Origin: Guillardia theta CCMP2712
Lineage: Eukaryota; Protista; Cryptophyta
DNA length: 64,000 nucleotides
NCBI RefSeq assembly: GCF_000315625.1
Contig: NW_005434662.1
Span: 8,026-72,025, forward strand
Reading direction: 5' to 3'
Part shown: piece after piece, positions 1 to 60,028 of the stretch
Position numbering within the stretch: the first letter of the stretch is position 1
Layout: each line of letters begins with the position of its first letter
The notes under the pieces: model-generated
Seen by the model: only the letters and a program-made list of their open reading frames with translations
The model's database searches: none
Told to the model about the DNA's origin: nothing
Translations under genes and position numbers: made by a program

Positions 1-454
1 TGTCTGCCATGGAAAACTGTCGCACTCTCTCCTCAATCAGGTACGCGAAATACCCCGACCCGTGCACCTCCTTTACCTTGAGCGCTATTGCAACAATCCA
101 AGCAAACCCCCCGGCACCGAGCAAGAAGCGAAACCCAGTGAGCGCCATCGCTGCTGAGATCGGATCTTGTGAGAAGAGAACAAGCTTTGGCCTCTTCTGG
201 TATATGACATTCTTGTTGAGGCTTCGCTGCATGTTGTCTCCTGGCAGCTGAGTGTACATTCGGACGAAGTCGGAAGTAAAATCTTGTCGTTGATCCCAGT
301 AATCTTTCAAATCTACCGGGGAGATGAGAACTGGAGTGGAGTCCGATTGGATTGCCACGGATACTTCCATGTCTTCATCGCGGATCGAGCCAGCAGAGCC
401 GCTGATGTCTTCAGCAATCATTCCTACTTCGGGAGAAACCTGATTGCTTTCCAT
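1..454 (-). CDS. 5' part of hypothetical membrane protein, runs off the window edge
   Basis: Manual translation from ATG at 454 gives an open frame to position 1 (MESNQVSPEVG...ISAAMALTGFRFLLGAGGFAWIVAIALKV...), with one hydrophobic stretch. Missing from the ORF track because there is no stop in the window. Confidence 0.6.
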   Translation of the reverse strand, partial: MESNQVSPEVGMIAEDISGSAGSIRDEDMEVSVAIQSDSTPVLISPVDLKDYWDQRQDFTSDFVRMYTQLPGDNMQRSLNKNVIYQKRPKLVLFSQDPISAAMALTGFRFLLGAGGFAWIVAIALKVKEVHGSGYFAYLIEERVRQFSMAD

Positions 455-1900
455 CGTATTTCGAAGTTGAGTGTGTCGATCTTTGTTACAAACTTGTATT
501 CGTCGCCTACTCGAGGTTCTTTCTTCCGGCCTTCTTCCTTTTCTTTCCTCTCCTTTTCTCTCTTCGCCACCTCCCCCCTATCTCACTCTTCTCTCTTTCC
601 CCCTCTTCTCCTATTCTCTCCCAATCTGTCTCTGCTCTGTTCTTTCCTCACTGCTACCCTCCGAGCATCTGGTCTCCTGCCCCTCCTCAGATCGTCTGTC
701 CAAATGGAGAGGAGGGTACATTCTTAGTAAAGGGGCTAAAACATTGTACACTTAATAATGCTTTACTAGTAGAATGATACTTGGCTGCGAGGAGTCCGCA
801 GTGGTAATCTGAAAAAAAACAATATCCGATCCATCGTATTGACAGTCGCGGAGGGAGAGAGTACCCCTACTTGTGTGGCGTCAAAGTAGTTTTTAAAAAG
901 GCACGAGTGACTAGCGCAGCGCCGAAGTGGCTAAAATCTTACTAATAAAACAATATATTTGTAGCACTTGTGTAATAAAAATATCCTGGCACGGCAGTTA
1001 TTATTATTAATAAAAGTAAAAGCATCACTCGAGGTCTTTCCAACTTTAGTTAACCTGGAGAAAGGGGTTTTAAGATCTAGGTTAAATGCAGGTGACCCTA
1101 GCTAAAGATTCCAGTTATCAATTTGTACCACAACGATTGCTTTTTTTAAACTGTCAACGATTTGTTCCATCGATGCATTCATGCGGTTGCCATGCTATCC
1201 AGAAAGAATGCAGATCTGATGCGTATGCGAAGGTTGCGTTGCTGTCATATGAGATTCCAGCTGTCAATGCAGGAAATCAACAACATGAAACGTACAGTAT
1301 GAAATCTTTTATTGCATGAACTTCCTAAATTCAAGCAAATGCTCACAATATTTGTGTACCCTTCAGGATTCATGTCTCCGATCCATGGTGACCGCAGATG
1401 AACTCACTGGAATCTGCTTGGCTTGACACATGCACAGGAAGCGGTGACGTTAGCCCGTTGGAATATCCTCTTCACCTCTGCCTGTTCTTGAACATATGCA
1501 TGATACTATGGAAAGATGCTGTATGTTAATCATATGTACCGTTGAACATTACATTTGGATTCGTTATCATTGTCCTCGTTGAACACACAACAGGAAAGCT
1601 TTCAGTAACACAATCTTGCTGTCTCAGGATGATAGTTGATGTTATGTTGTCAGTCAGATGGAGAGAAAGAGGTACACGAGAAGGAAGTCGGACGAGGCTG
1701 CGCACGCCATGCAGTGTACGCTATGTGGAACGCCCTGCCAGGGCGCCGCTCGTCGGCTTTTACCGAGATATCGAAACGTTGCGATTTAACCATTCAAAAA
1801 CGCTATTCAGGCCCTGAGAATAGTAGTGACATAGTGGACCAAGTTAAGTAAACCTTTAGTACCTACGGATTCAGAGCTTCCAGACTCGAGGCTCTCTCGA

Positions 1901-1966
1901 GTGTCCGACAGGGTCAAGCCGGGTTGATTATACTCGTACGAAATTTAACTTAACCTGACTAAAGAT
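1901..1966 (+). repeat. Degenerate copy of the ~160-bp intergenic element
   Basis: GTGTC..CAGGGTCAAGCC..TGATT..CTCGTAC..TTTAACTTAAC..TAAAGAT is collinear with the copy at 2774-2932. Confidence 0.6.
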
Positions 1967-2090
1967 ATCACCGTGATGACGGATGATTATTGAATTATCC
2001 TTTTTTAAAATGAGCACCTACCAACCAAGCCTGGCCTGGCACTCCAACACCCGTAGCAGCAAGACTGACCAACTTTGAAATAGGCTCCAG

Positions 2091-2221
2091 GATTGGGTTT
2101 GGTTCTCGCTGTCTTTTCTCTTCTCGCCGTTTGGCCTGTGCGACAGTGTCAGGGTCAAGCCTCCTCGCCGAGTCTCTCCTGATTGTCCTCGTACTGATTT
2201 TAACTTAACTTTGAGTAAAGA
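2091..2221 (+). repeat. Near-intact copy of the ~160-bp intergenic element
   Basis: GTTTGGTTCTCGCTGTCTTTTCTCTTCTCGCCGTTTGGCCTGTGCGACAGTGTCAGGGTCAAGCCTCCTCG...TGATTGTCCTCGTACTGATTTTAACTTAACTTTGAGTAAAGA is almost identical to 2811-2931. Confidence 0.92.
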
Positions 2222-2234
2222 GGGCTCCCCTTCA

Positions 2235-2760
2235 CACACGGTGGCACTCCGACGGGCCACCTCCTTGCGGAGGCTTCCCACACAGCCGCGCGGCACGAGT
2301 GGCCCGGGCCGGGGCTCAGTTGCGCAGTGCGGCGGCCCTGATCCGACTCTCAGCCAGGCCTGACTCCCCGAGTCCGGGAGTCCCGGTATCCCGGGGGCCC
2401 ATCATTGTCAAAAACACTGATGATGTGACATAGTACTCGTAGAAAATCCAGGATTAACTTCCCATCATGGCATGCCATCCGATCCGCCGGGAGTGGGCCA
2501 CCTCCAGTAGCCTTCCCGAGTCCGTCCGCGCATGATCGGCCAACCCGGCCGGGCGGCGATGGCCGCGAAGTACGGCCGGCGGCGCGGCGGCCCGCCTCAC
2601 TGCCGGCCCGGGCCCGGGCCGGGCCGATCGTAGTGATCGGCCCGCCACTCGTCAGCCGCCGGCCCGGGCCGGCCCGGGCCGATCGTAGTGCTCATTCCTT
2701 CGGCGGCGGCCACCGCGACATCGCTGGCATGGCCGCGCGGGGGACTTGTCCTGCGCGCCG
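2235..2760. promoter_or_regulatory. GC/CpG-rich intergenic island
   Basis: Dense GGCC/CCGG/CCCGGG words and short internal duplications, upstream of divergently oriented genes. The regulatory role is inferred from position only. Confidence 0.5.
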
Positions 2761-2773
2761 TTAAGTGAAGGTA

Positions 2774-2932
2774 TCAGTTAAGTTTGGGGGACAGCAGTCG
2801 GCAGGTTTAGGTTTGGTTCTCGCTGTCTTTTCTCTTCTCGCCGTTTGGCCTGTGCGACAGTGTCAGGGTCAAGCCTCCTCGACTCTCCTGATTGTCCTCG
2901 TACTGATTTTTCACTTAACTTTGAGTAAAGAT
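2774..2932 (+). repeat. Full-length copy of the ~160-bp intergenic element
   Basis: Matches the reverse-complement copy at 21005-21169 end to end (TCAGTTAAGTTTGGGGGACAGCAGT...TTAACTTTGAGTAAAGAT). Confidence 0.92.
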
Positions 2933-2949
2933 CTGCGTTCGCATTCAGA

Positions 2950-3370
2950 AGGACCCCCGAACACGTGCCATCGATTTTACCTACCCACCCCAACAACAAC
3001 CAGCATTACCACTCTAGGGTACGATTGAAGAAAAGCACCCCCACCCTCTTTTTCTATATACTCTTTCACTCCCTACCCCTCCCCTAGAAGCAGGGCCATT
3101 TAAAAAGCATGATGAGAGAGCAATTCACCTTTACTCACTTATGTCCTTCTTTGAAATCAGAGGTACCCCTGATTTTCTCTTTCGCACTACCCCTAGGGCA
3201 CCGCATCTACCACAGGATGCCATTGCTACCCTCCACCTCCAAGTTCACCACCCACTCACCCTTCTCCAAAGCTTCAATCACCCCCACCCTCTGTTGGTCA
3301 GTACTACCCCCAAGTATGAAGAAAACCCCGTCTTCCCTCCAAAATGTCCACCTGTCCATGCAGGGTTCGA
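2950..3370. other. TACCCC/CACCC-rich strand-skewed tract
   Basis: Repeated TACCC, CACCC and ACCCC words. Same texture as 30040-31340, 36120-36660, 41220-41970 and 51820-52060. Confidence 0.55.
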
Positions 3371-3869
3371 GATCCCATTGGGGCCGCTGCCGGTTCAGAC
3401 TTGCAGATGCTGCTCTTACGTTAGCCTATCTCCCTTGCCTGCGTACTGCAGGCTCCGCTCTCACGTGTTTGTGGAACCTCAACCCTGTATCCTTCTCTTG
3501 CTTACTTTCTCGAATTTAACCAGATTTCATGTGTTTTTGCTTTCGAATCGTGTACCATGATTTGCATGTTTGTCCAAGGAAATAAATTCAGTCGAAATGG
3601 AACGAATTGAACTGAAAGTCGGGGAGACTTTGTTTGACGTTGGCTCTGGTCTGACTATTTCGACCAGTTTTGATTGCTTTCGTGATGTCGGTTGTATCTA
3701 TCTCTGTGAAGGGAGCATTAAGAGTGTTCTGCTCTCGATTTGATTTCAATACGATTTACTGCACAAGTGACATGCTTAGATGGAGGCATAGAATCCAAAG
3801 AAATAATGAATATTTCATTTTCAGGAACCACAGTAAACTTCCTGGTTCAGCTTTCACATCGCATGCAGG

Positions 3870-6800
3870 ATGTTTCCTGGAGGTTCAACCTCCCATGATT
3901 GATGGTGCTGAACTGAATTGGCCTAAGCAGGAAGAGGATATCCGGGGAAGAAACCAGAGGCGAAGAAGACCGGTCCAGCTGCTGCATTTCCAAAACCTAT
4001 CAACCTACCTAGTCGTCGCAAGGAGAACAACGGATTCGATCCTAATGTTCAACTGGTTGGCACAGGCTCTTGGGCTGCTTCACAGAAATCAGCGAGTGGT
4101 ACATTGGTCTCCAACTCGAACAGCCCCCTGCGCTCGGCAACTGTATCTGCTGCACCCGAAGTGCCACGACCTTCGCAGCCCATGGGTTGGAACACATCAT
4201 CAGTGCAACCGAATCCTGTGTTGAATTCTGCGAATGCTAAACCAGATTCAGGGGCAGAATTTCCTAAACTTGGCGAAACTTCAAGTCGTCCAGCGATGAC
4301 ATTGACACAGGATTGGCAAATTGGCAGCCGTGAAGAAGCCAACTCATTTCCACGCCAGGAGCCTCCACAGTCTCGTGCCAATGCAAAGGAACAAGAAGCA
4401 TTTAAGAAAGATTTGTCACCTCCACCTCTTGTTCAATTTTCCAATCATGATTGGGCAGAAGATGATGACGATGAAATGGATTTCCAACAACCGATTGTCA
4501 TAGCTGGTTCAGGAAATGATTCGTCTAAATCTCAAGTGAAGGCAGCTCCCATCGATCCAAAGGAGGAAGCAATTATTCTGGCGAGGAAAAAACAGGTACA
4601 GTCAATTGTCTACGCTTTGAATTTTCTGAGAACGAATCAATCGACAGCAAGAGCTTGAACGAATGCAGGAAGAATTGATCATCCAACAACGAAGAGCAGA
4701 CATAGAAGCTTATGAGCGCGAAAAGAGATTGCAAGAAGAAGCAGAACAACGAAGACGGCAAGAAGAGATGGAACAGAAAAGACAGATAGTTGAAGAGCGC
4801 GAAAGACGATTTGATCGAGAGCGTGAAAGAGACAGATGGGTACTGAATATTACTTTGGTCAAAGGGTGTTCTAATTGTGTCACCTCAACAGAGAAATGAT
4901 GAGCCCAGGCGATCTGAGGAAGAGCGATGGTCTCGCACTTCTGATTTTCACAGAGTTGATGAAGAAAAACGATTGCAAGACCGTGAAGTCGCGAGCCAGA
5001 ATGAATTGATGAAGAAGTCAATTGAGGCAGCAAGGAAAAGAAGAGAGGAGGAGGAGCAGAAAATGGAAGCTGAGCGAAGAGCTGCTGCTCAGGCTAGACT
5101 TGCTGCAATTGAAGAGAAGTTAGCTGCTCGAGCGAAACCTGGACAAGATGAAGGGCATAAGCAGAGTGATAGCAGAGAGTCTGAGGTAATGAAGGAATCA
5201 TAATTTGAAAGATATTCATGGCATTTTCAGGAGAATGTGGATTCTTCAAATTCTTTGAAAGCCACGGAAGTGGAACAAGGAGAAAGAAATGAATCCATCC
5301 TGGAGAGGCCCAACCTACAGTCCAGACAGGGTAATGCGGCAAATTATTGGAGAATTGATCAACGAAACCAGAAAGTAGAATGGCCTGATGCAGACCAAGA
5401 AGCTTGGAGGAAACTTCGTGAAGAAGAACGACCAGAAGCTCGTGGCATTCTCGAACAGCATGCTCCATCTCACATGCAAAGAATGCAAGAAGGAAGAGGT
5501 TACCGTAGGGGATATGATGTCAAGCAGGAGAAATTTTTCAGCACAAACAGGTGAATTTGAAAATGAACACTTGTCTGAACCCTGTGCAACTGATTCCAAG
5601 TCTATTTGAATTTGCTAGATACGAGGTTGAAGATCAGACTGCTGCAAGCTTGAGGCGATTCATGGCAGAAAGGGAAGAACGAGAAATCAAGAACAAGGAC
5701 AAGCAACAGAGGGATGTGACTTACAGAGATCGACAAAATGAGAAAGAAGTTGAAATTGTTGATAGAGCAACTTTGAAAAAACAGGCGTTGGAAGAGAGGC
5801 GCAGGCGCGAGGAAGACCTTCGAGCAAGGCAGGCTGAAGAATTGGAACATGAAAATCCAAGTAGGGAAAGGTTTCCAGTTCGAACAAAATTACAGTTAGC
5901 GAAAAGGACTTTGCCTCTGGATTCTTCAAGACAGCCACCAGGTTCTGTAGCTATGTGTTTGAAACTGTAATCTGAGTATATGATAGACGGAGCGAACAGT
6001 ACAAATGGATCTCACGTGCAGAGAACAAAAGCAGATGTTCCTCCACCATCAGAAATGCCCATAAGCAGTGAATGGATGGATCACTCGCAAACAGCATGCA
6101 TACAAACGTTTGGAGCTCCTGAACTTGTCAACCAACTGGGTGCAAAAGCGTGGTCGTCTACCACAGTTACAGTGGCCCCAGGACGCAATGTTACTGGAAA
6201 AATGGCACCTCCTTTGGCACAGGGTTTACTATCAAATCCCGTAATCGGCATGCACACCAAACCTGATATTGCAAGACAAGAAATTATGAATGGAAGTGCT
6301 TCTATGCCTGTCCGGTCGAAAATTCAAGATGCTAGTGATGTAGCAACAGGAGCAGCTGACTTCATCCTCGGTGAGGATGACGTCCGTCGAACGAATAATA
6401 TGCAGAATGTTGAGGAGTCCTACACAGCAGTTCCAGAATCGGCCAATGTGATGGGAACTGATGCTGCATTCCAACATCTGCCCAGCTCAGAATGGACATC
6501 ATGGCAAGGATGGAAGTATGATCAAACATTCAGCTCTTTCACAACAGCGGGTGTAAATTTAAATCTTAGTGATCTCCCTCTTCAAATCCCAAGTGATCAA
6601 TCTCTTTGGGTCCCAAAGCAGGATCCAACTGATTCTTCCAAGGCGAACTCACTCTTCAAAGGTACTCCTTGGACCCCGATTTGGCAAACAGACACTTCAG
6701 TTGATCAAGCTGCGATTAGGCTGCCCGCAAATCAAGGACGGGGCTCTAATGAGAATGCGGGTGGGTCGGATTACTCTGTCTCTGGACAAGGCATGAGCAA

Positions 6801-8959: not shown

Positions 8960-9620
8960 GCCCCACCCGGACTCAGTCGCCAAGCAGTGCGGCCCGGACC
9001 CGCCTCCCGGGTCCCCGGCCCGGCCCGGCCCCCGCGGCCGCCGGGCCCGGCCGGGCCGCCCACGCAGCCTCCAAGGCAAGGCCCGGGGACTCAGCCGAAG
9101 GGCCCGGGAACATAAAAAGTAAACCCCGGGCCTGGCCGCCGCTTGACAGGCTCATCATGGCATCACTTCCAAAGTTCCGGGAACGGCCCGGGGCCCAGCC
9201 TCCGGGCGGCGCCGCGGCGGCCTGGCAGGCCGGGCTGGCTGGCGGCGGCCCAGCCGCTCAGGGGCCCGGGGCCCGGGCCCACCCCCGGTCACTGAGTCAC
9301 GGCGTGACCCGGAGGCTTCAGTTCCGATGACTCCTGGCAGCCTGAGCCCCGGCCGCCACCAGGCTCTCCTGATCATCGGATTGTCCTCGGGGGCCTCGTA
9401 CTGATTTTTATCTCATAGCGTATGTAACTTTGAGTATTTCGGAGGCTCTTGCCGGTCCGATCCGATCCGAAGCCTTGACTCTGTGAAGCCTCGGATGATG
9501 CATGTCCGCCGGCCGGCCCCCGGCCGGCGGGCCGCGGGCGGGTCACTGAGTCACCGGGCCGGGCAGTGGCCGAGTCGGACCCGGGCCCTCAGGCCAGTCG
9601 GGTTGGGCCCTGAGCGTCCG
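8960..9620. promoter_or_regulatory. GC/CpG-rich island between divergent LRR and PUF60 genes
   Basis: Extreme GC content, with GTCACTGAGTCAC twice (~9288, ~9543). Confidence 0.5.
9364..9436 (+). repeat. Insertion-interrupted fragment of the ~160-bp element
   Basis: CTCTCCTGAT[catcggat]TGTCCTCG[ggggcctcg]TACTGATTTT[...]TAACTTTGAGTA. Confidence 0.75.
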
Positions 9621-15049: not shown

Positions 15050-15530
15050 TCACTGAGTGAATCCGAGCGGCCTGACTCGCTTGAGGACCCTTGAAGTTTG
15101 TCGGCCCTGCAACGGTCGCCACCCTTCACTAAGCTTCAGCGGGGGGCGCTCACAGGCTTGGCAGGCAGGCAGCACTAGCCGCTGAGCCGCTGAGGACCAC
15201 TCCCCGGACTTCCGAGCAAGGCTCAGCGGCGGCTTGAAACCGTTACTTTCCCTTCCTGGACTCACTCGAGCGTCAGGGCAAGTCACTCCAGACGTTCTGC
15301 CTGTCTGATCGCACTGTCTCAGTGAAGTACTGATTGTCCTCGTACTACAAACAAGCCTGACGGTCGCGGCTTGACAAGCTCTTCTCTCACAAGCAGTGAA
15401 GGCTGCGATTGAAATATCCTTTACTCAAACTGAGTTAAGTTAAAACTCAGTACGGAAATCTGTTGATCCGGATGAGATCGGCAGAACTTCAGTAGTCATC
15501 AGAGCCGGGTCGGGCGACCGGGCCCCGGCG
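15050..15530. promoter_or_regulatory. GC-rich island with two element fragments (15330-15346 forward, 15419-15454 reverse)
   Basis: Exact 17-mer CTGATTGTCCTCGTACT, plus reverse CTTTACTCAAA[ctga]GTTAAGTTAAAA[c]TCAGTACG. GTCACTGAGTGA at ~15049. Confidence 0.55.
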
Positions 15531-15703: not shown

Positions 15704-16410
15704 ACCTTGTCCTGGAGACTACTACCTCTACTGCTTTGGTACTACCCTCCCCCCTCGAGCACAAATTGGGTTGGGTCAAAATGAACCCCCGACCCCGTCA
15801 TACAGATTGGGCAGTCCGCATCCCGTGTCGGAAACACGAGGGTGGAGGGGTGTAGACACCCTGGAGTCACAGCTCTCAGGTAGGGTGGGTGGATACGACA
15901 GCAGCAGAACTTCGAGAAGACTAGATTTAAAAAATGGTTTTATATCACAACAAAATTGATTCCACAAAACAGTGCAAGTTTCAAAATGAAGCGGAAATTT
16001 TACATATTTTGACTAAATTTCGGGAGATTTGGAGAAGCCTGTCTAAGCCGAGCCACGTGTGCCAATCAGCAATGGAATAAATAATCTAGACCTTCTCTCG
16101 AACTACCCCTACCCTCTAATTCAGACAAAATATTGACAATCAGATGGAACATTTTAATCACCGTCCACTCCTTCAAGAACAGAGTTGGCGTACCCAGATG
16201 AAAAGTTTTTTTTGGGAGGGTTTAGATGCCGGATTGGACGCTCTTCATACCACCGTCTTGCAGGGATCCATACTTTTTTTTAACGAAATGAAGGGCCCAT
16301 CCAATGGAGGGGGGTGGGGCATGTCAAAAGCGACCTAGATGCGGGGGTGGGGTGGGTTGGGGGGAAAGGCGGGAAAAGAAGTGTGAGGAGCTTCGGACAC
16401 AGCACGCGCC

Positions 16411-17253
16411 ATGTCCAACAAGGTACGCCACGCGTTGATAAGAGAAGGATGTAAACCCTACTGCTCCTTGTGTCTGCTTCTATGCAGGCACAGTTGTTTT
16501 GCTCGTCTGTTTTGTATTCCCTCTCTGTTTTAGCATACATTCGTAATGCTTTACTTTCCGAATATTGCCGTTGCTTGCTGTTGAGCCTTGCTGACTTGCT
16601 TGTAACAGAAAATTGATGGCCCAGCCATTGGCATTGACCTTGGAACCACCTACTCCTGCGTAGGAATTTGGCAAAATGAACGTGTGGAGATCATCGCCAA
16701 CGACCAGGGCAACAGGACTACTCCATCGTGGGTTGCCTTCACAGAGTCAGAACGCCTTATCGGAGACGCTGCCAAGAACCAGGCTGCGATGAATCCCCAC
16801 AACACCATTTTCGATGCCAAGCGTCTCATCGGTCGCAAGATGGATGATCCCTCCCTCCAGGCTGACTTGAAGCACTTTCCATTCAAGGTTGTCACCAAGG
16901 ATGGCAAGCCTCATATCCAGGCCGAATACAAGGGAGAGAATAAGACCTTCTCTCCTGAGGAAATCTCCTCTATGATTCTCACCAAGATGAAGGAGACCTC
17001 TGAGGCCTATTTGGGTAAGGAGGTCAAGCACGCTGTCATCACCGTTCCAGCCTACTTCAACGACTCCCAGCGTCAGGCCACCAAAGATGCTGGCTTGATT
17101 GCTGGTCTCAACGTTCTTCGTATCATCAACGAGCCTACTGCTGCTGCCATTGCCTACGGTCTCGAGAAGAAGGGTAGCGGAGAGCGTAACATCTTGATCT
17201 ATGATCTTGGAGGTGGTACTTTCGATGTTTCTCTTTTGACCATCGACGATGGA

Positions 17254-20799: not shown

Positions 20800-21300
20800 A
20801 TGAGCCTATGATGCCCGGCGGGCCGGGGTCGGACGGTCCGGAGCCGTCACGGCGACGGTCCGTCGGGACTGGGAGTTCCGAGTCCGATGCCATGATGATG
20901 ACCCTCACTGAAATCAGACTCAGTCTGACTCAGTGGCGCGGGGGCCGGGTCACTCCGATGATGATCATAGCCTAGTAGCGGGCGGCGTCACGGTGTGACA
21001 GTCATCTTTACTCAAAGTTAAGTTAAAGATCAGTACGAGGACAATCAGGAGAGTCGAGGAGGCTTGACCCTGACACTGTCGCACAGGCCAAACGGCGATC
21101 AGAAGAGAAAAGACAGCGAGAACCAAACGGGCCCAATCCGGCCAACTGCTGTCCCCCAAACTTAACTGACAGTCACTGACTCGGTGCCGGCGGCGCACTC
21201 CGCAGTGCCCGGCCACCGTTCGGTACGGTGCCCGGTGGTCAAACGGCGGGCCGGGGCCGTGACCGTGACTGCAGTAGTGCTCCCGGGCCAGCCTCAGCGA
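20380..21300. promoter_or_regulatory. GC/CpG-rich island between divergent TPR and DENN genes, includes (GCC)n at ~20746-20797
   Basis: Extreme GC content, TGACTCAGT words, and one full copy of the element. Confidence 0.5.
21005..21166 (-). mobile_element. Full-length ~160-bp element, reverse orientation, flanked by a 9-bp direct repeat
   Basis: Reverse complement of 2777-2931. TGACAGTCA lies at both 20996-21004 and 21167-21175. Mobility is inferred. Confidence 0.6.
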
Positions 21301-21494
21301 GTTTGTGCGGAGTCAGCAAACTTGACTCGTACCCGTTACAGTCTGTTTGTGTGCGATCGGAACCTCAAATAAATTTTGAAATCACCTCTGGTTATTTCAT
21401 GTTTTAAAGCAAAAAATCAAAGCCTGCTCTCAAATTTCAATTTGAGTTTGCATGGCCGGGATGCCTGTGCGTGGAGAAGGTTGAAGGAGGAAGG

Positions 21495-21760
21495 GAGGGA
21501 GGGAGAGACAGAGACAGAGACAGAGACAGAGACAGAGACAGAGACAGAGACAGAGACAGAGACTGGCAGGCAGGCAGGCACAGAGACAGAGACAGAGACT
21601 GGCAGGCAGGCAGGCAGGGGTGGGGGGGGGGGAGAGGGAGGGAGGGAGGGAGGGAGGGAGGGAGGGGAGGAGGGAAGAGAGAGAGACAGAGGCAGCCAGG
21701 CAGCCAGGCAGGGGGGGGGAGGGAGCGAGGGAGCGAGGGAGCGAGGGAGAGAGAGAGACA
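21495..21760. repeat. (GAGACA)n/(GGCA)n/(GGGA)n compound microsatellite
   Basis: Direct observation. Confidence 0.9.
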
Positions 21761-51819: not shown

Positions 51820-52495
51820 TCAGGGGGTAGGGGTACTTCTAATCCACCCTAGTACCCTATATTTTGACTCTAATTTTAGGGTAGTTAAAAAGGAGTAAGG
51901 GTACTTGTTGGGACCACTAATGCACGTGAGGTTTAGCTCATACCAAAAACCTCAAACAAACACGATGACCACCCACCTCAGTCATAGTACTGAGTCTATG
52001 AGGACCGGTTCTATCAAGGGACAAAGTACCCGTACATCGGTGGAATAGATCACCCCGACGGCCATACCGTCACTGCCGCATCGGCTCAGTAGCAACTGGG
52101 GGAGTCCCCGACTCGAGCCCGATCAGCCTTCACGGTCACGTCAACGGTTGAGTAAAGTTATTCCCCCACTGAGGCTGCCAAGCTCGGCGGCGTGACGGCA
52201 TGACCGTGACTCACCGTGCCGGTCAGCCTTTCAAGCCGGGCCGGGCCGGGCGGACTGAGTCCGGGAGCCTGAGGCCTCAGTGAGTCCCCGGATCGGAGTC
52301 CGGCCCAATGACGGTCCCGGACCGTCACCCCGGCGGCGGCCGGGTGCCCGGGCCGCGGCCCGCGAACGGGGGCCAGCCGCAGGCCGCGGCGCGGCGGCTG
52401 CGCCCCGCACTGCACTCAGTGACTGCGGCAGCCTGCCGGCTGACCGTGAGTGAGGACCCCGGCCCCAGTGCCCGCCGCCGCCGTACTAGGCTACT
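51820..52495. promoter_or_regulatory. GGGGTA tract plus GC island between divergent ACL5-like and LRR genes
   Basis: G/C-run tract at 51820-52060 and GC island at 52060-52495. Element 3'-end word TTGAGTAAAG at 52148-52157. Confidence 0.5.
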
Positions 52496-55539: not shown

Positions 55540-56435
55540 GTTAACTCCGCTTCCGCGTTCTCGGGCCTTCTCCGACCCGACTGGTTGGAACTCCGGGCCG
55601 GGGAAGACTGAAGGGCCGGGCTCGGAGAGACAAGACCCGGTCAGGGTGATGAAGTAAAGGCCCCTCATCAGCCACGGTCGCTGACTCAGTGACTGCTTTA
55701 CTCCAAGTTAAGTTTACGAGCATTTATCACTGAGGAGAGTCGAGGAGCACGGAGCCTCGGAGGCTCAGCTTGATCGGACCCTGGCAGTCACGTTACTGCC
55801 AAAGTGACCGGGGCCCTGACACTGTCGCACTACTGGCCAAACGGCGCCGGCGAGAACTTCAAGGCTTCGGAAGACTCGGAAAAAACCGTGACGGGCCGAT
55901 CCGGCGGGCCCCGGGTGGCCGCCGGTACGGTAGGCCACTCGGAACGGTAGTCAGTACCGTACCGTACCGCTGGTGATCGGACTACTGGCCGCCGACCCGG
56001 GCCGGCGTACGCCGGGCCGGCGTGCCCGGCCGCCCGGCGGCCGGCGCCAGTGCAGTCACAGTGCCGCAGCCTCAGTGCCAGTGGGCCCGGCGGGGGGCGG
56101 CTCCGCCGGGGCCGCCGGCGCGGCGCGGCCCGGCCGCGGCCGTTCAACTTGGCAAGTTGAAGCCTCCGTCAGTTTGCCCGCCGGCACCGTCACGGCGCCG
56201 TCACGGCGCCGTCCCGGCGATCGGTGAGCCTGGAGGACGGCCGGCGTCCGCCGGGTCCGGGGACGTGACTCTGGCTCACGGCGCGGCGGCCGCGCCCCGG
56301 CCCCGGTCCACCTTTCAAAGTTCTCAGAACGGTCCAGCCGCCGGGCCGCCGCCCGCCGCCGGGGCCCGGTTTGATCAGTTCCGAAGCCTGTTTCAACGTC
56401 AACCTGAGTGACTGAGACGGTGCGGGCCTGAGCGG
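55540..56435. promoter_or_regulatory. GC/CpG-rich island between divergent MYB and Nop15 genes
   Basis: Extreme GC content, TGACTCAGTGAC at ~55682, and the hairpin TTCAACTTG-G-CAAGTTGAA at ~56142-56160. Confidence 0.5.
55696..55856 (-). repeat. Insertion-inflated reverse copy of the ~160-bp element
   Basis: CTTTACTCcAAGTTAAGTT..TACGAG..AGGAGAGTCGAGGA..CTTGA..CCCTGACACTGTCGCAC..GGCCAAACGGCG..GGCGAGAA, collinear with 21006-21100. Confidence 0.8.
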
Positions 56436-58999: not shown

Positions 59000-59219
59000 C
59001 TGCAGATCAGCCCGAGATTAGCCCAATGTCATGCTGTAAGGAGGGACGAGGAGAGGACTGGGGATACAGCGGAGAGGACATCCGACCCTGATCGGAATCC
59101 GACTCAAGCAGACCAGCCTTGGAGTGGGACAGGAGCAGAAGAGGGGCAGGAGCAGGGACAGGGGCGAAAGGGCGAGGGCGAGGGCGAGGGCGAGGGCAGG
59201 GGCAGCGAAACTTGAAGGA

Positions 59220-59420
59220 GGAGCAGGACCAGGAACAGCAGGATCAGGAGCAAGAATAGGAGCAGGGGCAGGGGCAGGGGCAGGGGCAGGTGCAGGATCA
59301 GGAGCAGGATCAGGATCAGGATCAGGAGCAGGAGCAGGATCAGGAGCGGGAGCGGGAGCGGGAGCGGGATCAGGAGCAGGAGCAGGAGCAGGAGCAGGAA
59401 GAGGAGCAGGAGCAGGAGCG

Positions 59421-59485
<65 letters not shown>

Positions 59486-59526
59486 GGGAGCGGGAGCGGG
59501 AGCGGGAGCGGGATCAGGAGCAGGAT

Positions 59527-59557
<31 letters not shown>

Positions 59558-59648
59558 GGGAGCGGGAGCGGGATCAGGAGCAGGAGCAGGAGCAGGAGCG
59601 GGAGCAGGAGCAGGAGCAGGAGCGGGAGCGGGAGCGGGAGCAGGAGCG

Positions 59649-59683
<35 letters not shown>

Positions 59684-59695
59684 GGGAGCGGGAGG
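59220..59695. repeat. (GGAGCA/GGAGCG/GGATCA)n hexanucleotide repeat
   Basis: Direct observation. Confidence 0.92.
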
Positions 59696-60028
59696 CCACT
59701 GGACAAGGCCGCACCCACTCCCCTCGGCCAAGTTGGGAGGCCCTCCCCCCTTTACGATATTCCTCGGGGTTTACCACCCGTCAGAAGTACCCCATCCCTG
59801 GGAGATTGAGGGGGGGGCGGGGGGGGGGCGAGGAGGAGGAAGGGGAGGAAGGGAGGAGAAGAGAAGGAGGGAAGGAGGCAGTGGAGGTAGAGATAGAGGT
59901 TAAGTGACGGAACAAGAGATAAGGGAGATGGGAAGCTGCAGGTCATTGTGAGAGATAAGTCAGTGGGGAAAACTTCGCTGGTGTCCCCTTGAAGATTATC
60001 GACGATGAATGGGGGGGGTTTGAAGTAG

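Follow-up and report, generated by a model that had tools for sequence, protein, structure and literature searches.

Short interspersed elements (SINEs) that depend on stringent LINEs, such as eel UnaSINE1 with its partner UnaL2 and those dependent on CR1, L2 or RTE, have a non-poly(A) 3' tail in common with the partner LINE. Headless SINE-like elements are found in protists, namely the EhSINEs of Entamoeba and the RIME, NARTc and SIDER elements of trypanosomatids, and these are deletion derivatives of known LINEs or share a tail with them.

The DNA analyzed here, hereafter called the window, is a stretch of 64,000 nucleotides of the Guillardia theta nuclear scaffold JH992976.1 (1.09 Mb; assembly GCA_000315625.1, Guith1), and its coordinates are obtained by subtracting 7,794 from those of the scaffold record. 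It carries nuclear genes for HSP70, a RhoGAP-SH3 protein, a DENN protein and LRR proteins, and introns of 45-68 bp are seen in its transcript contigs. The first exon of HSP70 consists of four codons (ATGTCCAACAAG) and is followed by an intron of ~200 nt and a main exon of 1.9 kb (window 16410-16630).

An earlier note on the window had described a non-coding element of ~160 bp at 2774-2932 and had proposed that it is either a non-autonomous mobile element or a dispersed cis-element. Our analysis favors the former, and we assign a probability of about 0.6 to the element being a short non-autonomous non-LTR retroposon (SINE-like), with a length of ~162 nt in its short form and 180 nt in its long form. 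Similar to the stringent-LINE SINEs, the element is short, non-coding and present in high copy number, it ends in a conserved 3' tail that can form a small hairpin and lacks poly(A), and it shows variable-length duplications, 5' truncation and lineage-specific subfamilies. It differs from them in that it has no detectable Pol III head of the tRNA, 7SL or 5S type, in that T-runs lie inside it, and in that its partner LINE is a presumed one. With the EhSINEs and RIME, NARTc and SIDER it has in common that it is a short non-autonomous retroposon with no recognizable small-RNA head, presumed to borrow a LINE enzyme via a common end. However, this likeness is by description and not by sequence, and the LINE of the element was not found. 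The literature searched contained nothing specific on SINEs or LINEs of G. theta and no description of the element.

Copies of the Element in the Window

A BLASTN search of the window with 2774-2932 as query returned 21169-21004 (92.2% over 166 nt, E 8e-66) and 2088-2221 (92.6% over 135 nt, E 9e-53), and the three near-identical copies noticed earlier are thus real, at ~92% identity. Decayed copies were sought with a profile HMM built from five copies. The features are the following:

21005..21166, minus strand: copy 3, the short-form reference of 162 nt; it starts GTTAAGTTTGGGGG and ends GAGTAAAGA
21167..21175, minus strand: target-site duplication of copy 3, 5' side, TGACTGTCA in element orientation
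20996..21004, minus strand: target-site duplication of copy 3, 3' side, TGACTGTCA in element orientation
2760..2931, plus strand: copy 2, the long form, i.e., the short-form unit plus a 5' extension of ~14-18 nt, GTTAAGTGAAGGTATCA
2089..2221, plus strand: copy 1, 5'-truncated (~26 nt missing), with a 6-bp direct repeat GGCTCC at 2083-2088 and 2223-2228
55696..55847, minus strand: old copy covering profile positions 64-156 (HMM E 2.6e-8)
9364..9436, plus strand: old 5'-truncated copy within a GC island (HMM E 7.6e-5), with a 7-bp direct repeat AGGCTCT
1907..1964, plus strand: old 5'-truncated copy away from GC islands (HMM E 1.3e-4)
15419..15455, minus strand: tail-only fragment, the last ~35 nt (HMM E 4.7e-4)
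15328..15346, plus strand: marginal 19-nt fragment, inverted relative to 15419-15455 (BLAST 17/17 nt; HMM E 0.2)
2229..2759, no strand assigned: GC-rich island between copies 1 and 2, 69-79% GC, single-copy and untranscribed

The coordinates first proposed for the near-identical copies needed small corrections: copy 2 begins at ~2760, the position at which DNA contigs of other element copies also begin, and copy 3 occupies 21005-21166. Regarding the decayed copies, four of those previously listed were recovered by the HMM at significant E, while the fragment at 15328-15346 is marginal and the 10-mer TTGAGTAAAG at 52148 is not significant alone (about 0.1 chance matches expected).

All-against-all BLAST of the window revealed no second repeat family. 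A separate, unclassified mid-copy repeat lies at window 1000-1800, at ~10-17x single-copy depth in both DNA runs; RNA reads map to both of its strands, and it carries no notable ORF or terminal repeats. We also observed a GC-rich tandem array at window 59100-59850, with self-similarity of up to 89% over 275 nt, located upstream of a plus-strand gene, and a long simple-repeat run of (GAGACA)n, (GGCA)n and (GGGA)n at window 21480-21760, between copy 3 and the RhoGAP gene. A GGGAGCGA-type short repeat in the latter region also matches locus L003.

Copies in Other Genomes

Additional copies were sought in protein collections by means of the translated sense frame and a small profile, and the contigs encoding the hits were then fetched. 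Such an ORF-based search favors long copies with GC-rich, and hence stop-poor, flanks. Ten contigs, representing eight distinct loci and originating from one unrelated ENA metagenome project, yielded ~15 further complete or partial copies. A sister subfamily with diagnostic bases was recognized on the metagenome contigs, carrying TTTCAGTAAA in place of TTTGAGTAAAGA and GTGTGGCAGTTTCAGGG in place of GTGCGACAGTGTCAGGG, so that the family is present in at least one further, related genome. In a k-mer index, the element was found only in runs under two names of G. theta and in a few aquatic metagenomes.

No copies were obtained from the protein search with the antisense frame. Three profile matches (P0058, P0060, and P0062) were rejected as unrelated tandem-repeat proteins. 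A metagenome scan with the 22-nt tail gave one match (L001) in which only 24-25 nt are shared within AT-rich DNA, and we attribute it to chance, given that ~0.4 chance matches are expected. Viral contigs searched with three patterns gave either no match or, within coding sequence of L013, a match of 18 nt that is attributed to chance. Furthermore, 28-46% of the sampled G. theta words are present in freshwater, lake and estuary metagenome runs (X15, X25, X26, and X27). G. theta is a marine species, and the words in these runs may come from relatives, contamination or spike-in.

The sense frame of the element is open and hydrophobic (LVLAVFSLLAVW...LLIVLVLIF), as can be seen at window 2765-3028 (+) and at L005:265-918, and gene callers applied to the metagenome contigs made this frame into "proteins" of 58-217 aa. 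False gene starts that resemble signal peptides are likely to arise from this frame. Partial tandem and inverted copies were also detected (L009:1770-1891, L006:581-750, L004:49-342, and window 15328-15455). The L009 pair is arranged head-to-head, with private variants common to both arms, and the L006 pair tail-to-tail; these arrangements suggest either that inserted copies were later duplicated locally, in inverted or tandem form, or that insertion occurred repeatedly beside an existing tail.

Ends, Duplications and Coding Capacity

Copy 3 is bounded by a perfect 9-bp target-site duplication, TGACTGTCA, located directly at both ends (p about 0.001-0.003), and a perfect duplication of 10 bp, GTTTGCAGAC, bounds the L005 copy in the same manner. 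Direct repeats of 6-8 bp were identified at L006, L003, 9364-9436, and 2089-2221, and the duplication of copy 2 is weak (CTGCG). The duplication lengths are thus 6, 7, 7, 8, 9 and 10 bp, and the combined evidence for target-site duplications over all copies amounts to p 2e-4 (Fisher). The two perfectly bounded copies, although they belong to different genomes, begin at the identical first base, (C)AGTTAAGTTTGGGGG. The 5' start of the element is GTTAAGTGAAGG, with (C)AGTTAAG or GTTAAGTG as candidate transcript starts. The three longest copies (2760-2931, L007, and L006) carry 13-18 extra 5' nt (GTTAAGTGAAGGTATCA) and end within ~5 nt of each other, and in this small sample no homology was found upstream of the extension.

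In general, the 5' ends are staggered between profile positions 2 and 129, with many copies being 5'-truncated (starts at 10-129), and the truncated copies at 2089-2221 and 9364-9436 possess flanking repeats of their own. The 3' end is conserved and sharp (...AACTTAACTTTSAGTAAA), followed by 0-6 variable nt before the duplication. The last ~40-42 nt are the best-conserved part among the copies, even among old ones, and the tail (...CTCGTACTGATTTTTAACTTAACTTTSAGTAAA) can form a small terminal hairpin, in which a single G/C difference is not compensated. The global RNA fold was not significant (z -0.29 sense, -1.25 antisense).

As the earlier note had observed, the element has no poly(A) and contains a 9-bp inverted repeat, AGTTAAGTT/AACTTAACT. 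This repeat is sub-terminal, its 3' arm lying 12 nt inside, and about 0.04 such repeats are expected by chance. No terminal inverted repeats were found at the ends defined by the duplications, which read GTTAAG... and ...GTAAAGA. The view that the element holds no credible ORF was borne out in a qualified form: one frame is open throughout, yet the indels between copies are not multiples of three and break it, so that there is no coding constraint.

Searches for a recognizable origin of the sequence were negative. Rfam gave no relevant match, either at the gathering threshold over the whole window or at E<=10 over 1800-3100; its sole match, GP_knot2, was well below its threshold and was rejected. 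ARAGORN found no tRNA, and neither of the two scans revealed a Pol III-type head (tRNA, 7SL or 5S). There was no vector match in a plasmid search used as a proxy and no Pfam match on the neighboring ORFs.

Taken together, the fixed 3' end, the truncated 5' ends, the variable duplications and the extra 3' nucleotides form the signature of target-primed reverse transcription, and the maximal length of 162-180 nt without coding sequence points to a SINE-like non-autonomous retroposon. Like canonical SINEs, the element is short (<700 bp), non-coding, interspersed and high-copy, with variable-length duplications. It is nevertheless not a canonical SINE, since it lacks a small-RNA-derived head and its sense strand contains internal T4 and T5 runs. 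Runs of this kind would terminate Pol III.

Copy Number and Transcription

Two independent DNA contig sets (X1 and X2) were compared with window 1-6000 in terms of k-mer depth, at an identity cut-off of 90%. Single-copy depth was about 59-67 in X1 and about 4.9 in X2. By comparison, depth reached 541,110 (X1) and 27,795 (X2) at position 2912 in the element tail, 41,781 and 1,982 at 2806, and 17,901 and 1,147 at 2759. In both DNA runs, the depth of the element is therefore hundreds to ~9,000 times that of single-copy DNA, as expected of a high-copy interspersed repeat, and it falls steadily from the 3' toward the 5' end (about 9,000x, 700x, and 300x). At >=90% identity, these depths correspond to thousands of tails and to hundreds of copies that are nearly full-length. 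The four tails in the 64-kb window fit a total of several thousand copies in a genome of ~87 Mb. At 2219/2220 and at 2929-2931, dozens of DNA contigs pass from the element into unrelated flanks, which shows that the 3' boundary is sharp and that the flanks are specific to each copy. Together with the target-site duplications and the truncated 5' ends, these findings uphold the earlier suggestion of a non-autonomous mobile element.

Concerning transcription, at least 35 RNA contigs cross the element tail, and reads cover the tail in both orientations, indicating that the element also lies inside transcribed regions elsewhere. Transcript contigs carrying the element show no discrete start or end at its borders.

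Proposed Mechanism and Alternative Explanations

For the SINE-like retroposon, we propose that the reverse transcriptase of an autonomous LINE would recognize the RNA copy of a master element by the conserved 3' tail of ~40 nt and, by target-primed reverse transcription, would then copy this RNA into a nick in the chromosome. Such a process would account for the duplications, for the frequency of 5'-truncated copies and for the 0-6 additional nucleotides at the 3' junction. The step that involves a shared tail is inferred, given that the partner LINE was not found. Transcription by Pol II is at least as likely as by Pol III, and the short form may start within an initiator-like motif, CAGT, judging from its sequence.

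The main rival, which we consider possible but doubtful, is that the copies are 5'-truncated 3' ends (3' UTR) of an autonomous LINE and not a separate short element. It agrees with the staggered 5' ends mentioned above and with a depth that decays roughly exponentially from the tail toward the 5' end. However, the 90% identity cut-off probably under-counts the more variable 5' half, so that the gradient, which may partly reflect this effect, was not taken as pure truncation. Furthermore, the two duplication-bounded copies share an identical 5' end, and the three longest copies, small sample though they are, stop within ~5 nt of one another with no homology upstream. Three of the eight window copies, which form an unbiased sample, measure at least 133 nt, far above what simple truncation decay would predict, and no reverse-transcriptase motif was found in the window or in the fetched loci. 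Each of the two readings can hold in part, provided that a SINE and a LINE have a common tail.

A very improbable explanation, also raised in the earlier note, is that selection maintains a dispersed functional cis-element, such as a core promoter, an insulator or an origin seed, in the 5' regions of genes. The enrichment of copies at GC islands upstream of genes and the good conservation of the last ~40 nt would agree with it. On the other hand, the duplications, the truncation and the thousands of copies are marks of mobile DNA, old copies are full of insertions and not conserved in place, and the orientation relative to the neighboring gene is mixed. A transcript starts ~400 bp past copy 2 (contig start 3337), with no pile-up of read starts at the element, and conservation of the tail is explained by recognition of the master copy at each round of copying. 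Only the anatomy of a mobile element was seen, and old copies decay freely; we thus set the cis-element proposal aside.

A miniature inverted-repeat transposable element (MITE), i.e., a promoter-targeting non-autonomous cut-and-paste DNA transposon, is highly unlikely. Size, copy number, proximity to genes and lack of coding capacity resemble those of MITEs, and the sub-terminal inverted repeat of 9 bp and the 9-bp duplication at one copy could be cited in favor of this reading. Nonetheless, the ends defined by the duplications, which are the true ends, are not inverted repeats, the duplications vary in length from 6 to 10 bp, and there are 5'-truncated copies with their own flanking repeats as well as 0-6 variable nt at the 3' junction.

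There is hardly any probability left for a family of small-RNA genes, such as those of a spliced-leader RNA or an snRNA, whose size and copy number would be in the range of the element, and a donor-like GTAAAG (exon TTTGA followed by GTAAAG) and a U-rich stretch are indeed present at its 3' end. The spliced leader of G. theta is CTCGGCGGCTGGTCAAG, which is 17 nt long and encoded by about 20 gene copies (Roy, 2017, PMC5619915). This leader is absent from both the window and the element, which refutes a gene for the known spliced-leader RNA; in addition, homology ends right after GTAAAGA, where a spliced-leader intron would continue, and no Rfam family matched.

The remaining candidates were rejected. 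A solo LTR, whose identity with the element had been named as a possible refutation, disagrees with ends that are not TG/CA and with the absence of one shared duplication: copies 1 and 2 lie on either side of a 538-bp island, each with its own duplication and with outer flanks that are unrelated, and their different flanks also dismiss a reading of the pair as LTR-internal-LTR. Helitrons were rejected on account of the duplications and of ends that differ from 5'-TC...CTRR-3', and Penelope-like elements and retrozymes because no hammerhead family was found (Rfam, E<=10 over 1800-3100). Finally, the GC islands are not the 5' body of a longer element, as they have only low-complexity words in common and are single-copy by depth.

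GC Islands and Gene Context

Islands were defined as 200-bp windows of >=65% GC, and with 50-bp margins they make up 18% of the window. Five of the seven window loci touch a GC island (permutation p 0.007, or 0.01 with the 2-kb cluster counted once). The element had been described as confined to such islands, and this holds for those five loci, whereas 1907-1964 and 15328-15455 lie off islands and the L003 copy has AT-rich flanks. The association is thus real but modest, and it is not exclusive. The metagenome copies were found via ORFs, with a bias for GC-rich flanks, and are therefore not counted as independent support. The islands themselves share only low-complexity words such as GGCCCGGGCC and are single-copy and essentially untranscribed according to depth and RNA reads over window 1-6000; for example, depth in the 2401-2600 bin of the island at 2229-2759 is approximately single-copy, with almost no RNA reads.

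The two copies with intact duplications, copy 3 and the L005 copy, are found inside islands, at locally AT-richer patches, and they were thus inserted into pre-existing islands. Regarding genes, copies 1 and 2 precede, by 400-1,250 bp, a plus-strand transcript whose start is at ~3337, and 55696-55847 lies between two divergent genes, 206-357 bp upstream of the minus-strand one. The HSP70 start codon (ATG ~16410) follows the fragment at 15419-15455 by about 950 bp and the pair at 15328-15455 by ~1 kb, and copy 3 is situated between the 3' end of HSP70 and the start of RhoGAP. The 5' context of genes reported previously was therefore found at the loci where it was checked (copies 1-3, 55696-55847, and 15328-15455). 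Since about three-quarters of the intergenic spacers in a compact genome hold a 5' end, however, five of five loci at a 5' junction is not significant alone. As for the idea that promoters are targeted, the enrichment at islands upstream of genes agrees with it, while the small sample, the AT-rich copy and the occurrence of the element in many transcript contigs speak against it.

In the SINE-like retroposon scheme, copies would reside mainly in or beside GC-rich, palindrome-rich islands upstream of genes for one of two reasons. Such islands may offer preferred sites, in the form of open chromatin or nick-prone palindromes, or selection may remove insertions elsewhere in a gene-dense genome with short introns. 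Selection of this kind could explain much of the island pattern.

Decay of Copies and Possible Island Growth

Comparison of the copies with the profile revealed 18 insertions of at least 3 nt, totaling 159 nt with a GC content of 64%, in contrast to 50% GC for the element. Deletions amounted to about 56 nt, giving a ratio of inserted to deleted bases of about 3:1. Several insertions recur beside GGGTCAAGCC. The copy at 55696-55847 has been enlarged by ~60 nt of GC-rich insertions, which create odd palindromes such as GAGCCTC[C]GAGGCTC, and a 5-nt GC-rich insertion in copy 1 (2089-2221) produces CTCG[C]CGAG. Insertions of this type were seen in the GC-island copies at 55696-55847, 9364-9436, and 2089-2221 as well as at L004, L007, and L011, and the palindrome arms exceed those of shuffled insertions in length (p 0.002). 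Island copies are thus eroded by short GC-rich palindromic insertions, and as a result old copies look like part of the islands.

We tentatively suggest, as an idea less likely to be right than wrong, that the family homes to GC palindrome islands and that the islands grow by template-switch ("copy-in-reverse") insertion, which overwrites the copies. The data behind this suggestion are the island enrichment, the insertion bias and the palindromes; neither the targeting nor the mechanism is established by them.

Implications for the G. theta Genome

Judging by depth, the element probably ranks with the more abundant interspersed repeats in the genome of this reference cryptophyte, where it would account for roughly 1% of the DNA. 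As a retroposon, it would be ordinary mobile DNA, and its candidacy as a regulatory motif is set aside. Annotators should be aware that the open frame of the element can be mistaken for a signal-peptide-like exon. The many copies of differing age also offer a means to measure how GC-rich palindrome islands originate and change. If the proposed homing and island growth are true, the retroposon copies would be dated markers for a process, mutational or defensive and so far undescribed, by which the islands are built.
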